Assembly (NCBI GenBank): GCA_907165135.1
Contig: OU015567.1
Location: 6,634,001-6,698,000 of the forward strand
Reading direction: 5' to 3'
DNA: 64,000 bases
Source of the DNA: Oikopleura dioica
Lineage: Eukaryota > Animalia > Chordata
Position 1 is the first letter of the stretch, and each line of letters begins with the position of its first letter. The notes below the pieces were generated by a model that saw only the letters and a list, made by a program, of their open reading frames with translations, was not told the origin of the DNA and made no database searches. A program made the translations under genes and the position numbers. This document shows, in pieces, positions 14,723 through 31,189 of this stretch.

Positions 14723-16677
14723 ATGGGGAAATTGCCGGAAGAGAAATACAAGGGGGATCATCACGTAGATCCGGAGGGAAATAAAGTTAGCGTTTCGAAG
14801 AAATCACGATGTAGAAAATTCTGCTGCCGGTAATTTTTCTCGAATTCTAGGGTGCTGAAATTTCGAAACGTTCAGTTTCTTTGCTGTTACTTTTGGACTC
14901 CTTACGACTTATATTTCAACGATTCTGATCGTTTACAAACGGGTTCAAAAAAGAATCGCTATTGACGTAGTTTTAATGCTTTTGACTGACAGATTAGATA
15001 CAGTAGTAATTAAGCCCCTCTTTTGAACCCTCTTTCTCAGACGCTGGACCTTCCAACTCAAGGAGGCTCGGATAATTACTGCGACTCATTCTACGTCGAG
15101 CCATCCTCCTCAGTTGGCCCGTATCTTTATGACAATACGTTTGATATTTCGTCACCGATCGATTGGTCAGATTCAGGCGGAGAAAATGCTCTTAATAAGT
15201 TCAGGCCAGGTTCTTTTAGATTGGGCTCGGAAGACTGTGTAGAAACCTGAGTCAGGGTCCTAAGAAAGCCGCGCTAGAATTTGCGAAAATAGATCAAGGT
15301 GGCTTTTTCGGCGAAGCCGCTTTGCGGCTTCGTTTGAAGAAAAGCCGCTACGCGGCTTTTTATTTTGGATCTTTACTCAGGTTTCTTTCAAGTCCAACTT
15401 TGACACATTAGAATCGATCAAGAACCTGTTTACCAGAGCCATCGGAACTCACAATTCCTACCACCGACAACAGTATCCAGGTTCCCCAACGTACTGGGCG
15501 AACTGGTGGGCTCGGGCGATCCCAGACTGGAGTTATGAACACCCACCTTTGACCCAGCAATTTTCGATGGGCTGGCGAACGCTTGAACTTGACTTTCACA
15601 TGCGAAAGAAGGCCTCGCTCATTTATCACATTCAAATGTGGGATCAGCTGACTAACGAGTGCACATGCGCCGCATCATGCTTTAAATTGATCAACGATTG
15701 GTCGGAGGCGAACGCGGGTCACTTCCCCTTGTTCATCATGCTTGAGCCGAAATTATTGGGATTTCTTGAAGACTCTGAAGCGATGAGGGAAGAAATAACG
15801 CTCGAAAAACTGCTGCTCTTCGAACAATTGGCGATTCAGAGCTTTGGAAACAAGATCGTCACTCCAGGTTTTAATCAAATTCAATGAAATCAAGGAAGAG
15901 ACCATCGCCGTTTTCAGACGCCCTCCGGAACGGAAAAGAGTCAGTTCTCGCTTCGATTCAAGAAAGTGGCTGGCCAAGTGTTGAGAATTTCTACGGAAAG
16001 ATTTTCTTTATCATTTGGAAGGAGATTGACAACGAATTGATCCAGCTGTACATTGAAAACACGAATGGCTTGGAAGGCCGAGCATTTTTCCCGTACCAAT
16101 ATTTTGGGAACAGATACGAAGGCGGTGGAATCACTCCATTCCGTAAGTTGAACGATTCATAGAATGAAAGAACTTGTAATAAAGTGAATATGGATGGGCC
16201 GCAATCCGAAACCATTGATGCTCGGAAAGAGGGCTTTATCACTAGAGTGCGAATGAATACAGGCCCGGTTACAGTTCGCTTTAGTTCACATGGATCGAAG
16301 CAGTGAGAACGTCGTGGAAGCGCTTGAAGAAGGATTTATCGCTAGAATTCGAATGAATACAGGATGGTTATTGCACGTCTCTTGCTCTTTAATTTTCGTC
16401 AAAAGTTATGTAACCATTAAAAGTGCCCGGTTTGTCCCCAGATGACACTGGTGAAAGCGACGGTCGTTATGAAGACTCAGTTAATCAGGTCTTGCATCAA
16501 TTACAGCTTTTTCCGTTATCAGGATGAATTATTTAGGGCGGTAATATCATCTCATTCGACCAAAGATACGACTACTGCTGGGAACTGCTCAAGAATGACG
16601 AACGATGCGAAGTGTTCACGCCAGCTGGTGATAAAAATGCAAAAGTCTGCAAGTGGACTTATAATTCTGATCAATAA
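14723..16677 (+). CDS. Type II membrane PI-PLC X-box protein of the bacterial Ca2+-dependent family (Streptomyces SaPLC1-like, Pfam PI-PLC-C1)
   Basis: MGKLPEEK...CCR|FFAVTFGLLTTYISTILIVY (TM); IGTHNSYH, WSYEHPPLTQQFSMGWRTLELDFH, YHIQMWD, WSEANAGHFPLFIMLEPK, SGWPSVENFYGKIFF, GFIARIR, GGNIISFD. Confidence 0.8.
15221..15388. mobile_element. CTGAGTCAG-family MITE in PLC intron
   Basis: GGGCTCGG..CTGTGTAGAAACCTGAGTCAGGG plus AAGCCGC/GCGGCTT hairpins. Confidence 0.75.
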
Positions 16678-16781
16678 ATTGAAGGAAAAAGCGAATTCAA
16701 AGGGCTGAGATGCATTCTTGATTTTCCAGTTTATTATCACTGTCGAAAATGACCAGTAATGGCGAACAGAGTTTCTATTCA

Positions 16782-17300
16782 GCAATGAGCTCGGTGAGTT
16801 TCATCATGGCGGCTTGAAAGTCCCGGAGCGCGTTGATCGATTCCACGGCAGCTCTTCCAAACTCCTCCGCCAAAACGCCTAAAAATTTCAAATAGAATAG
16901 CGGAAAAGAGAAATAATATTTATATCATACCAGCTTCTTCGCTTTTGCCATTGAAATTGTCGCTCTTGTTGGCTCGATCCAAGAACTAAAAAAACTGCGT
17001 TATTATCTAAGCAACAAGATCATCTGATCACCTTTTGGGCGCAAACAGTGGCGATATGCTTGTCCATATTTCGTTTTTTGACATCTTCTTGGGTTGTTTT
17101 GATGAACTGGCCAATCGCTTCTTGGAGGTTCTTTTGTAAGTTAGAAAAAGGGTCGAACATTGATGATTTGATAACATAGATGAGATTATATTTATGATTT
17201 TTGTAACTTTCCTCAAAGCCTCGTTCGTAGTTTTTCTCGATGATCTCAGTGCAGACAGAGAGCAGGTCTTTTCATGATCATCAAAATTAACCAAATTTAC
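16782..17300 (-). CDS. 3' exons of a hypothetical helical protein
   Basis: GT-AG exons give EAIGQFIKTTQEDVKKRNMDKHIATVCAQK|FLDRANKSDNFNGKSEEA|GVLAEEFGRAAVESINALRDFQAAMMKLTELIAE*; 5' end not resolved. Confidence 0.5.
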
Positions 17301-23904: not shown

Positions 23905-25810
23905 TTTAATTTGTGCCCTTGAAATAAACGACTGCCAGAAATAATTGAGTGGCCTCTTTCGCGTTGGCCTCGTAAAAGATTGTGCATGTTCCCACATGGA
24001 ACTTATCCTTTCTTCCCGCTGCGGTTACTACCGTCGCTTCTAAATATTTGGCCGAGTTTCCAAAGAAAAATTCGCTTCCAAATTTATATGACCATCCTTT
24101 ACTTTTCTACAGCACAACCTGGGCTCGCACCCTGTGTAGAAAACCTGAGTCAGGTTTTGAAGATTATAGATGATAAGCCGCGTAGCGGCTTTTTTAAAAA
24201 TGTAGCGGCTTTTCATTTGACTCGTTCATAACTCTGATTCAATCTTTATAATCAGGTTGCCGAGCCCAGATTACAGTACATTGAAAGCTAATCTTCACTA
24301 GTGCATTTTACCCACCTTCGAGCTTTGCAAGGGCTGAGTCCCAAGAGAGACGAAAGAGAAGAAAAGGGACCAAGCGGATGTCGTTACTCGAGAGGAGGCT
24401 TCCCACGGGTGAACGTTAAATCTTTATAGTCAGGGAAAGCAGCTGGCAAAGTTAATTCTTATTGCGACTCAACGCCAGGCGCATCATTTTGAAAGGGATA
24501 TAATATTGATATTTCTATTCATGCATTGACTTTATTTGATGATGGGAAAAAGGGCGCAGTGGAGAAATGTTAAATTTGTATCAATGGAGCGTTTAATGTC
24601 GTTGGCAGTTACAATTTGTGACTCAGAAGATTCTGAAGAGCTTCTATGAAAAGTCGCGTAGCGGCTTTTTTTTAAACGAAGCCGCGCAGCGGCTTCGCCA
24701 TAATTCAAAAATATGTTGTGATGCTGATTTCGCAAAGCCGCTTCGCGGCTTCTTCTTTAAAAAAGCCGCTACGCGGCTTTTCATTTCGATCTTTCAGAAC
24801 CCTGACTCAGGTTCTCTACACAGGTCACGGAGCTCAGTTAGTATGGGTTCGTAAATTGACGGAAAATGCCATAAAATCGTTTTTGCCGAAGTCGGATAAG
24901 ATCAGAGGGCAGCGAAACGGAATGGACTTTGGTGGTGTGGCCCGGTTATGTTACGACATCCGGTCATAAAGCTACTGCTTGGAGGTTTGCTCATTTTCCT
25001 CGCAACGGGTAGACAGTGCTCTAAATTATCAGCTGTGAAGAAGAGTGGCACGGGTCTTGATTTTGCCTCTTCCGGAGGAGAAAAATGAGAGTCCCGGAAG
25101 AAGGGAATTCGCTGGGGAAAAAGTTGGGAATCAAAGGGAACCGCGCGTGCTCCGTTTTTGCGTTTATTAGAGTCAGAAGCGGAGCAGTACCTATTGATCG
25201 GCATGGAACTCGGCATGGCGCAGCGTGAGACTTTGATAATGATTAGAGGAGGGTGCCGAGGAACTCAGTATGTACCGAGTCTGACCATAAAATCCGTCAC
25301 TCACTCTCTTTTTTTCAATGTCAATTTAGAAAATATTCTTCTGAAAAAGCAAAAGCAGTAAAAATTCTGATCAACTTTCAGCAAAAGAATCGTTCCAGCT
25401 CGAAAGTGTACTTCCGCGGTAAACTTACGAGCAGCGATTTGAAATTATGAAACTTGTCAGTTCCGCCGCGACCTTCAGCGTTGTCGGGGAATTCTCCGCG
25501 ACTTGTCTTTTTTGATATCAATTGCAATGCTGGCGTCGCCGGGGCGCAAATTTACTTATCACGGGTTTATTCGTTATACTTTGTTCGATAAGCGACCGCC
25601 ATGTCGAGGATGAGAGACGCCAGTGACGAAATGAAGCGAACTGAAGAGTGGACTCGGACGAGAACGGATCAGGATTGAACTCAAAGCTAAGCGAAATTCG
25701 TTCAAGATGGAGAAGATCAAGAATTTTGAAGAAAAAGAGGGAAAAATGAAGTTTATCTTCGTCAAAAATTGTGCCTTCGGAAAGCTTTTCTTTTCCTTGG
25801 CTTGGCAACC
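23905..25810 (-). CDS. Probable hypothetical gene(s), structure unresolved
   Basis: Terminal exon-like KGWSYKFGSEFFFGNSAKYLEATVVTAAGRKDKFHVGTCTIFYEANAKEATQLFLAVVYFKGTN* plus several upstream open stretches. Confidence 0.3.
24119..24269. mobile_element. CTGAGTCAG-family MITE (further copies about 24618-24838 and 25801-25860)
   Basis: CTGGGCTCGCACCCTGTGTAGAAAACCTGAGTCAGG ... CAGGTTGCCGAGCCCAG. Confidence 0.8.
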
Positions 25811-27192: not shown

Positions 27193-30100
27193 ATGAACCC
27201 TGGAAACTTGCAGCCCAAGTACGAAGACGGAAACGGCTCGACAGGCTCCTTCGCCTCGATGAACTCAGAAAGCCATGCCCATTCAATTGGCATGCCTGCC
27301 ACGAGCGGGTTAAGCTGGGCCCCACCGGTTTCTACCGTCGGCGGTCTTCGGGAAGGCAACTTGTTTGACCACACCAACAGGTAAACGCGCCCATATAAAG
27401 GGGTAAGCTACCAAGCTACCCAAATGGCCTTATTAAAGTCCGAACGCTGTGTGCCTTAACCTATCTATTATTGCCTATAAATTGAGCATTAAACTACAGA
27501 CCTCACAAGTGTCTTCACTCGTTGCCCAGAAAAATGAACGCGAAATTGTAAGTGAAACTTTTTCGAAAAAAGAAAGAGAAAGATTAAGCTGCCAATAAAG
27601 AACTTTTATTCGGCTGTTAAAATAAATATTAATTATAGATTTATATTTTACTAAGCATTTATTGATAATAAATGTAGACAAGTGATTAAAAAAGGCATTG
27701 TTGTAGGAAAGCGGGGCAGGTTCAATTTAGCGAGATTGGTATTTTATGACATTTGTGAGAGCTGGTTAATTTATTGAATTCATAGCCTAGGGATTCGGCC
27801 ACAAGGTTTTGTCGATTGTCGTTTAATTGGTCTGTTTTAGCCAACCAAAATTGGAACCGCCATCGGTAGATCCTAACTCGAATCCTTCATCGGCAGAATC
27901 GCCCCTGATTGGCAACGTCTACGCGAATATTTACGAAAATAGAGTTTTGGTAAGACCATTTTTTCCGCTGAAAGTTGGAAAATAAAATTTTCAGCAGGGA
28001 AACCAGCCGATGTTCGCGCACAATCCAGGCTTCATGCATCGCGAAATGCCCGGCCAACAGCCCTTCTACCATCCGTAAGTGAATTTGTGCAGCTTTGAGA
28101 AATGCCAAATTATTTATCGCAACGTTGATAAAAATTCAGTAAATATTAACCGACGTGCTAATTAAATACTAGCAGGAAGTTCGAGTCCTTCAATTCGCTA
28201 AATCAGAATTGCGCTTCAATTCTGCTTTTCTTTTCTCATCTTTGAAACCTTCCGGGAGACCTTTGCTCAGTACCAAAGTCTTTCGCAAGGTCAGCATTTC
28301 GGGGCGGAGGGTAAACAGCGCCGCCGCTAAAATTGTAAACATCTAATTGGCCAAACATTTTTTTTATGACTCGAGATCAGCGAAGGTCTCTTTGAAGTTT
28401 AAATGACCTTCATTGGACTTATAACTTATAACTTATGGCCATTCTGATAATGATTACGAGGGAATTAGCAACTATAACTTTGTTCTTAGAAATATCATCC
28501 GACCAGGGGGCTGGCCACATGTCATGGATCCCTACTCGCAGTCTGGCATGCCTTTTCACTCGACTTTCCCAGGTAAGAAATTTTTTCTGCTACATTTTTT
28601 CACGACTTCCGGGAGAATTTAAGGTCTTCCTGAGTGACTCAAACTTGCTAAGCTTGATTCGCCCCGCGACAGAATATTGAGTCCCCTTTTTTCTTCTTTG
28701 GAAATTTGAATGTCTACGTAAATTTTCCGTGGATACGATATCGGTTGATAAGATGTCCAGAGTTTACCTCAGCAATGAATTTTACTAGTCCTCAAATAGA
28801 CAAAGGCACCAGCCGCAGGGCGATATCGTAAATGACACCCTTGAGGCGTCAGCAATTCATCAGGAATGTAAGAAACTAACTCTATAAAGAGCCTATAAAT
28901 GCAGGTCAAGCCCTTTGACTTCCGCTTCTGATATTATTTCTGCGCCCCATAAGAAATATATGGAGTCGTTTTCGTGATTTATGTGACGCAAATGGGCGCG
29001 ATGGCAAGATTTATGACTGCCTCGTGTTGTTAAAGTTTTCATCGAGCATAAAAAGTAAGCTAGCGCGAGTCAGAAATGATGATCATAAACTTGGATTATT
29101 GCGCGATCCGTTTAATCATATAAATCAGTTCACGATGTAAAGCTGTGGCTCGCAAATCACACCAGTTCTTTCGGCAATATTTGTGGTTTCTTACTATTTT
29201 ACAATTTTACGATTCTTAGATTATTTCGTGATTAATGAAGCCGACAAAGTCTACTCTTTCTTGATTGCAAGGAGCAATCGCCACTTTTGTCCCTTTTCAA
29301 CGGGGAAAAATTAGACTCTTAGTGTCTCTTTTAGAGTGTACCCCTAGTTGTTATGGCATTTGGGCACACACGTGGCGATGCCCATTGCCATTTGGCTACA
29401 TGTTTGACAAGTAGACAGTCCCGTAAATTCTCACCTCAATCATTTTCCGATCAGAATTGACTTTCACAGAATAAAAATTATTTGAAACATAAAGCAGTAA
29501 AAGTAAGCTCAAGAAAGAAGATACAAAGATTTAAAATTGACGAGCTACTTTTTTCAAATCGCGAAATAGCGACGGAAGTCGCAAACTTTTTACATGCTAT
29601 TGTAAAACCAACTTAACGTCAAGTAACAACCCTAACCTGCCTCATAACTTACACGTAAAATTGGAGCCTCGCTCATAATTATACAATTGTCGACTAATTT
29701 CTTCGTTAACCAAACCTTCTTGTTTTTACCCCACATTTTAACCGGCCAATTTTCAACTTCAAATTCCAGTTTGAAGTTTCCCCTACAAACTGGGCTTGAA
29801 AACCTGTGTAAAAACCTGAGTCAGGCTCTGAAAGAGCTTAGATAAAAAGCCGCTTTGCGGCTTTATAGTAACTAAAGCCGCAGAGCGGCTTCGCCTGAGT
29901 CTTACAACAGACAATAATTGTCATCTGAGTCAGAGCCTGAGTCAGGTTTTCTACACAGGTTTCGAAGGCCTTGAAAATGAATACCCGAATCCGCGTATTT
30001 TGCAATGATTCGTCGCTTCTTTCACCCCGGAAGTGTTTCGTTCCCTCGGTGGAGTGGTTGACGTTCTGGGCACACACATAAAAACTCTTCGATAAATCGA

Positions 30101-31189
30101 GCTCCTTTTGTGAAGGTGTTATTCCAACACATAAATTTCATGCTCAAAGCGCTTTTCTTTGCGCTCGTCAAACATAATGTAGGAATCTCCAATTCAAAAA
30201 GAAGCAATACACAATTCTGCTTGTAAGCCCATCATGCTGCACAAGCGGTAACAGGGGGTTATAAAAAAATTTCGACAATTTGAAATTAGAGTTTTATCGA
30301 CCTAGACTCACGGGGCGGCGTGATGAAAAGGGCTGGGCCGAGGAAACTTCCAATCCTGTCGGAAGCGTTCACTTAACGAGATCAATTTATGACCCTTGGG
30401 CCTCATACTGTGCGGCTCTGTTTGAAACGGCAGTATTAAAGCATGACACACAAAAACACCCTTTTATACTAGATAACTTCGAGTAAGCTCTTGTTACAGC
30501 TACATAAGTAGAAATCTGAGTCAGAACCTGAACAGCTCAAATGAAATATAATAGTTTCAATTAATCCTCAAATAATATCGAAGCCGCTTTGCGGCTTCGT
30601 TTTAAAAAGCCGCGACGCGGCTTTTCATTCGAGCTGTTCATATTCTGACTCAGGTTTCTGCAGATTTTCGATCCAAGAGTAATAAGCTAATCAACCTCTT
30701 TTAGGACTCTATTCTTATCCAATGCACACAGCGATCCGCAAGAAGCGCCAGCCCTACTCAAAGCAGCAAACTCGCCAGCTAGAACAAGAGTACGCCCAGA
30801 ACAAGTTCATCACGAGGCAAAAGAGGGAGCAGATTTCTCGAGATCTGAGCCTGACTGATCGACAAGTCAAGATCTGGTTTCAAAATCGACGAGTCAAGGA
30901 AAAGAAGGTAAGCGTCCTTTTTCCTTAATTTTCTCGACCACGTGATTGTGTGATCAAAAAAGCTAATTGATAACAGATTGAGCAGGAACGAGAGCGAAAG
31001 GAAAGCCACGGCGGAAGCAGCGGAAGCGCAGTTGGAAACGGTGGAGGTTCCGCCGAGATGGCCGATGATCCCGAAAGCCCGCATTCTTCATTCGCCGGAC
31101 TGGGCATGAGCACGGACAATTTTGGCCAAGAAACAGACGCACTTGGCCACGATGGAACAATCAAGTCGGAAGTACTGAAAAACTGCTAA
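27193..31189 (+). CDS. Hox13: Posterior Hox (Abd-B class, Hox13-like) transcription factor; exons 27193-27380, 27841-27949, 27995-28074, 28490-28572, 30705-30907, 30977-31189
   Basis: Homeodomain [57 protein letters not shown] (EYA.NKFIT and VKEKK are paralog-group-13 type); all six exons join in frame via GT-AG. Confidence 0.85.
29790..29970. mobile_element. CTGAGTCAG-family MITE in Hox intron 4 (second copy about 30508-30663)
   Basis: AACCTGTGTAAAAACCTGAGTCAGG ... CCTGAGTCAGGTTTTCTACACAGGTT with internal hairpins. Confidence 0.8.

Follow-up and report, generated by a model that had tools for sequence, protein, structure and literature searches.

The Ca-dependent PI-PLC-like gene g5796 of Oikopleura dioica carries two tandemly duplicated copies of its sixth exon, E6a and E6b. 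We conclude, with a probability of about 0.72, that the two copies are mutually exclusive and that their joint inclusion in one mRNA is probably blocked by the short spacer between them. The gene occupies positions 14723..16677 (+) of the window, the whole stretch of 64,000 nucleotides that was analyzed, which belongs to chr2 of O. dioica OKI2018_I69.

The gene and its two deposited isoforms

In a profile search, the exons flanking the duplication match the Pfam family PF16670 (Ca-dependent PI-PLC), with an E-value of 3e-18 on E4, and the product of g5796 is membrane-anchored and resembles a Ca-dependent PI-PLC. Orthologous metagenome contigs were recovered by a word search that used exon 4 as the query. 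Using a spliced contig as the query, we then recovered two GenBank proteins of O. dioica OKI2018_I69, both derived from g5796: g5796.t1 (CAG5111492.1, designated P0014), which carries E6a, and g5796.t2 (CAG5111493.1, designated P0005), which carries E6b. Each protein is 433 residues long, and all 13 residues that differ between them lie within exon 6. An eight-exon model of the window (Table 1) gives a spliced translation exactly equal to P0014 when E6a is used and to P0005 when E6b is used. An alternative start of E4 at 15381 is ruled out by the spliced contig L008, described below, and by the GenBank proteins. The two PLC isoforms proposed in the original prediction are therefore deposited as g5796.t1 and g5796.t2, which differ in the choice of E6a or E6b alone, and both are already present in public gene models. 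The OKI2018 annotation was produced with AUGUSTUS using RNA-seq intron hints (PMC8008620); given how AUGUSTUS works, the t1 and t2 models are presumably each backed by RNA-seq hints of their own. A full-text literature search returned no papers on mutually exclusive exons in Oikopleura.

Table 1. Exons, introns and candidate pairing arms of g5796, in positions of the window
Feature	Positions	Strand	Remarks
E1	14723-14829	+	model reproducing P0014/P0005
E2	14876-14966	+	model reproducing P0014/P0005
E3	15041-15204	+	model reproducing P0014/P0005
E4	15437-15867	+	model reproducing P0014/P0005
E5	15918-16142	+	canonical GT donor at 16143; ends in phase 1; splices to E6a or E6b
E6a	16185-16262	+	(L)NMDGPQSETIDARKEGFITRVRMNT; GC donor at 16263; isoform t1
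Spacer	16263-16284	+	22 nt; 5' arm GGTTACA; likely branch site TTAC; E6b acceptor AG
E6b	16285-16362	+	(L)HMDRSSENVVEALEEGFIARIRMNT; GA donor at 16363; isoform t2
E6b-E7 intron	16363-16423	+	61 nt, GA-AG; 5' arm ATGGTTAT at 16364-16371
Shared 3' arm	~16408-16416	+	TGTAACCAT; common to the 61-nt GA-AG and the 161-nt GC-AG (E6a-E7) introns
E7	16424-16488	+	first 18 nt encode VPGLSP; seen in P0005, P0014, L008, L011, P0016
E8	16537-16677	+	model reproducing P0014/P0005

E6a and E6b are tandem duplicates

The original prediction described two 78-nt exons entered in the same phase, preceded by AG acceptors, followed by non-canonical donors and separated by 22 nt. All of these features were found: both exons are entered in phase 1, the acceptors lie at 16183-84 and 16283-84, and the donors are GC at 16263 and GA at 16363, the first of them opening the 22-nt spacer. 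The period of exactly 100 nt that was also described is a property of the window's lineage, as the corresponding distances in two other lineages of the O. dioica complex, represented by contigs L002 and L001, are 105 and 112 nt. E6a and E6b are neighboring homologues that share length and phase; they are 62% identical in nucleotide sequence and 50% identical in amino acid sequence, with 13 of 26 residues differing. Each can be aligned, gap-free, with the exon that related species have in single copy, so that the resemblance reflects true paralogy and is not due to chance. No third copy of the exon and no paralogue of the gene were found within the window.

The more distant relatives (L004/P0006 and L010) contain a single-copy exon with no intron after it. 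Of its approximately 25 residues, 14-15 are identical to E6a versus 11-12 to E6b. The canonical phase-1 intron between E5 and E6 is common to the O. dioica lineages and to L004 and L010. The single copy in the relatives dates both the duplication and the gain of the intron that follows the exon to the O. dioica stem, before the three lineages compared here (OKI, L001 and L002) split. Neither non-canonical intron of the gene, E3-E4 or E6-E7, is present in L004 (5830-7210) or L010 (255-1235). An excess of non-canonical sites has been reported among newly gained introns of O. dioica (PMC4122922), a pattern that the absence of these introns from the relatives fits.

Each spliced sequence contains one copy

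Mutually exclusive use, as originally proposed, is supported by every spliced sequence found: exactly one of the two exons is present in either deposited isoform and in each of three spliced sequences, at low depth. The JGI contig L008, which is 97-99% identical to the L002 lineage, is spliced E4-E5-E6b-E7-E8; it skips E6a and uses the upstream acceptor of E7. The Logan contig L011 (run ERR9850593) is 100% identical to the exon blocks of L001 and has the same B-form structure, and P0016 is a further B-form fragment. The predicted junction from E5 to E6b (16142 to 16285) is present in both L008 and L011. The downstream joint of the prediction was misplaced by 18 nt: the next exon had been expected at 16442, and E7 in fact starts at 16424, which adds the residues VPGLSP. 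This acceptor is attested by the five sequences named for E7 in Table 1 and by RNA-seq reads. In three runs, nine RNA-seq reads are split from 16306 to 16433, a pattern explained by an L001-type B-form mRNA with the 16424 acceptor being aligned to this window. The joint between E7 and E8 is also confirmed by RNA-seq reads.

The RNA runs X1 and X4-X6, filed under the same species label, are 90-95% alike to the window between 14500 and 17000. Their variants at 16452-16479 match the metagenome contig L001, and the runs derive from another cryptic lineage. With runs from another lineage, read alignment on this genome at default likeness misses most of the reads.

The B form accounts for the three assembled transcript sequences and for every informative read, and no A-form transcript was directly seen; when the C-terminal part of P0014 was used to look for fragments of the A form, only the B-form fragment P0016 was returned. 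For the reads, this absence is uninformative: alignment to the diverged lineage used a likeness threshold of 88%, and E6a of the window is 87% alike to that of L001, so that A-form reads would be rejected. One X4 read covering ~16176-16262 was discarded as evidence for the A form, as it includes ~9 nt of intron and is probably unspliced RNA. We also considered whether splicing might start at the GT that lies 4-5 nt beyond each non-canonical donor, and rejected this. Splicing there breaks the reading frame, which is backed by third-position substitution patterns, and contradicts the transcripts. Excision of the spacer between E6a and E6b was seen in none of the sequences found, at low depth; because rare forms are lost in contig assembly, occasional inclusion of both exons, or skipping of both, could have escaped.

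Both copies are under purifying selection

The conservation check suggested in the original prediction gave a positive answer, as both the L001 and the L002 lineages carry both exons, each under purifying selection. Between OKI and L001 or L002, synonymous sites are near saturation (pS 0.71-0.75). E6a has accumulated 0 nonsynonymous and 6-13 synonymous changes (dN/dS 0; Fisher p 7e-5 to 4e-11), and its protein sequence is 100% identical in 4 loci from the three lineages. E6b is the faster-evolving copy, with 3-10.5 nonsynonymous and 5-10.5 synonymous changes (dN/dS 0.13-0.15; Fisher p 0.0005-0.011). The constitutive exons show 43-55 nonsynonymous and 93-161 synonymous changes, corresponding to a dN/dS of 0.03-0.08 that is undefined for the OKI-L002 pair, where synonymous sites are saturated. 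The substitution pattern of E6a and E6b indicates that both exons are translated.

These data bear on the question whether E6a is used at all. That every transcript sequence and informative read found is of the B form would be expected if E6b were the only exon in use, E6a being a silent relic and the t1 model an artefact of prediction. We consider this very improbable, because a relic would not be expected to keep an identical protein sequence in three lineages through 6-13 synonymous changes without a single nonsynonymous one, nor to retain across the lineages both its AG acceptor and its G[C/A] donor, and because the annotation that contains t1 was built with the intron hints mentioned above. 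We infer that the A form is truly used in vivo.

Among the relatives compared, the six extra codons at the start of E7 (VPGLSP, 16424-16441) occur only in the O. dioica lineages. In the three genomic lineages the peptide persists despite synonymous changes, with the serine codon switching between TCC, TCG and AGC; P0016 reads VPGLGP at this position.

The spacer is shorter than the introns of the gene

Between the two copies, OKI has a spacer of 22 nt, L002 one of 27 nt and L001 one of 34 nt. The real introns of g5796 range from 38 to 232 nt (n=18, three lineages), and the 34-nt spacer of L001 is thus merely 4 nt under the shortest of them. In O. dioica generally, the median intron is 49 nt long, the most frequent length being 47 nt (PMC8008620, PMC4122922). 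Each spacer contains a branch-site-like A ~12-13 nt before the E6b acceptor, the candidate in the window being TTAC at 13 nt, which places it ~8-21 nt from the E6a donor across the three lineages. From the difference between spacers of 22, 27 and 34 nt and real introns of at least 38 nt, steric exclusion by the short spacer is plausible.

The sequence of events that we propose is the following. One exon was tandemly duplicated in the common ancestor of the O. dioica complex, and each mRNA would take one of the copies, giving two 433-residue enzymes that are 13 residues apart. The 22-34 nt between the exons would be too short to be spliced out, probably blocking double inclusion, as the spliceosome parts assembling at the E6a donor and at the nearby E6b branch site would exclude each other. 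Retention of the spacer would cause a frameshift.

Double inclusion would require that the 22-34 nt spacer be removed as a micro-intron, yielding a protein with a repeated 26-residue unit. Although 78 + 78 nt stay in frame and the spacer does end in G[C/A]..AG, no transcript or gene model contains both exons, the spacer is shorter than every real intron of g5796, and a repeated strand-helix-strand unit would disrupt the barrel. This outcome is even more improbable than the disuse of E6a. Mutually exclusive use with a steric block is the reading that we prefer.

Comparison with known systems

E6a and E6b form a real and conserved pair of duplicated exons that are probably mutually exclusive, and the class of mechanism is known from nematodes and mammals. 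In C. elegans, mutually exclusive exons separated by short introns include egl-15 5B/5A (14 nt), let-2 9/10 (30 nt), bet-2, gly-5 and gly-6; the minimal intron there is ~40 nt, and no isoform with an excised intervening intron was found (PMC4165533). Like these cases, the g5796 pair consists of homologous tandem exons with a length that is a multiple of three, separated by an intervening intron of probably sub-minimal size. Unlike them, both alternative donors of g5796 are non-canonical (GC and GA), as is typical in O. dioica. In C. elegans exclusivity was tested by RT-PCR, whereas in g5796 it is read from sequences.

Exons 2 and 3 of alpha-tropomyosin are a case of steric interference. A steric-interference class of mutually exclusive exons has been described in human (PMC5740500). 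In g5796, the likely branch point for the downstream exon would be too near to the donor of the upstream one, as it is in alpha-tropomyosin and the human class. In mammals, however, the intron is long enough and the branch point alone is displaced, whereas in g5796 the entire spacer is 22-34 nt.

Docking-site and selector systems, such as those of Dscam, 14-3-3 zeta and ATE1, form a further group, for which an origin by tandem duplication has been described (PMC6071210, PMC7797038). As in these systems, g5796 has a shared element that is complementary to a copy beside each alternative exon, and the copies of the arm would have been made by the same duplication as the exons. The differences are that the g5796 arms are 6-8 bp long, fixed at the intron ends and overlapping the probable branch site, and that they show no covariation.

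Candidate stems close the non-canonical introns

Three donors of g5796 are non-canonical, all with GGT at +4/+5. The E3 donor is GC in OKI and GA in the other lineages, the E6a donor is GC but GA in L001, and the E6b donor is GA. Introns with these donors carry a complement of the GGT arm 8-11 nt before the AG. A GGTTA(C) arm follows E6a and another follows E6b, both complementary to a single TAACC arm situated 8-9 nt before the E7 acceptor; in docking-site terms, the two alternative exons each have a candidate selector that matches one common dock. The E3-E4 intron, whose real junction joins 15204 to 15437 with a non-GT donor, lies at 15205-15436 in the window, at 1646-1716 in L001 and at 968-1058 in L002, with its arms at +3/+5 and -9/-11.

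It is possible, though we regard it as doubtful, that competing stems mainly set exclusivity and exon choice: with two GGTTA arms and one TAACC arm, one donor at a time would be brought to E7, an arrangement compatible with a steric block. The arms pair over 6-8 bp in all three lineages, the energies of the arm-to-dock duplexes range from -6.3 to -11.9 kcal/mol (shuffle p of 0.008-0.08 in six arm tests that are not independent), and in each of the three lineages both the MFE and the centroid fold contain the closing stem. A stem scan detected no such stems in the canonical GT introns of g5796. The non-canonical E3-E4 intron has the same architecture, and its stem shows compensatory changes between lineages, OKI having CAGGTTCTT/AAGAACCTG versus GGTCAA/TTGACC in L002. 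Selector and docking sites have, moreover, been described as arising by tandem duplication (PMC6071210). Against this stands the invariance of the GGTT/AACC core, which leaves no covariation at the E6-E7 intron; TAAC may be conserved simply as a branch site and GGT as a U1-like site. The stems are also short, and the z-scores for folding of whole introns are not significant.

If the stems do act in this way, two GGUUA arms would compete for one UAACC arm that overlaps the E7 branch site, in the manner of a selector and its docking site. We suggest only tentatively that the duplication, in addition to the exon, copied the 5' arm of a stem-closed, newly gained non-canonical intron, and so would have created a minimal selector/docking switch. 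In that case, the structure-assisted non-GT introns of O. dioica would automatically make exon duplications mutually exclusive switches. The idea of competing arms is the sole potentially new element of this analysis. The preferred explanation of exclusivity continues to be the short spacer.

Exon 6 encodes a late element of the barrel

An AF2 model of the protein (pLDDT 69, pTM 0.71) has as its best Foldseek matches 5fyr (E 6.5e-14) and 3h4w, both Ca-dependent PI-PLC structures, and the gene product combines the PF16670 profile with the TIM-barrel fold known from the bacterial Ca-dependent PI-PLC. Both the GTHNSYH motif and the columns of R360 and R362 are conserved; the two arginines, both within exon 6, are nearly invariant. 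In the model, exon 6 corresponds to residues 340-365 and comprises a strand (339-342), a loop, a helix (347-354) and a second strand (358-363). This strand-helix-strand unit lies late in the barrel, in agreement with the late helix or strand named in the original prediction. The loop and helix of exon 6 account for 10/13 of the differences between the A and B forms. VPGLSP, at the start of E7, begins a low-confidence loop that is predicted to be disordered.

In the extremely compact genome of this chordate, the pair provides a clean and conserved case of probable mutually exclusive splicing, in which one enzyme gene gives rise to two variants of the barrel element bearing a conserved RxR motif. 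Its link to non-canonical, end-paired introns makes it a small testable system for the recognition of non-GT donors, one that could show how an exon duplication turns into an either/or switch. The practical impact of the finding is modest, since public gene models already contain both isoforms and since nematodes and mammals already provide examples of this class of mechanism.

Neighboring observations

A palindromic element, AGCCGC-NNN-GCGGCT, occurs 16 times in the window versus an expected 0.07, often as two hairpins 28 nt apart. Its sites include 15315-15357 and 14 others, e.g. 24652-24778, 29848-29890 and 30582-30622. The E3-E4 intron of g5796 holds two copies of the palindrome and is 232 nt long in OKI, compared with 71 and 91 nt in the other lineages; the two copies and the greater length make this look like a lineage-specific insertion of a MITE-like repeat.

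The contig L008 runs past the stop codon of g5796, and its positions 1380-1961 (~ window 16700-17200, minus strand) match L002 with a 42-nt gap. This gap is probably an intron of a convergent neighboring gene, and its occurrence within L008 suggests that the 3' ends of the two genes overlap.
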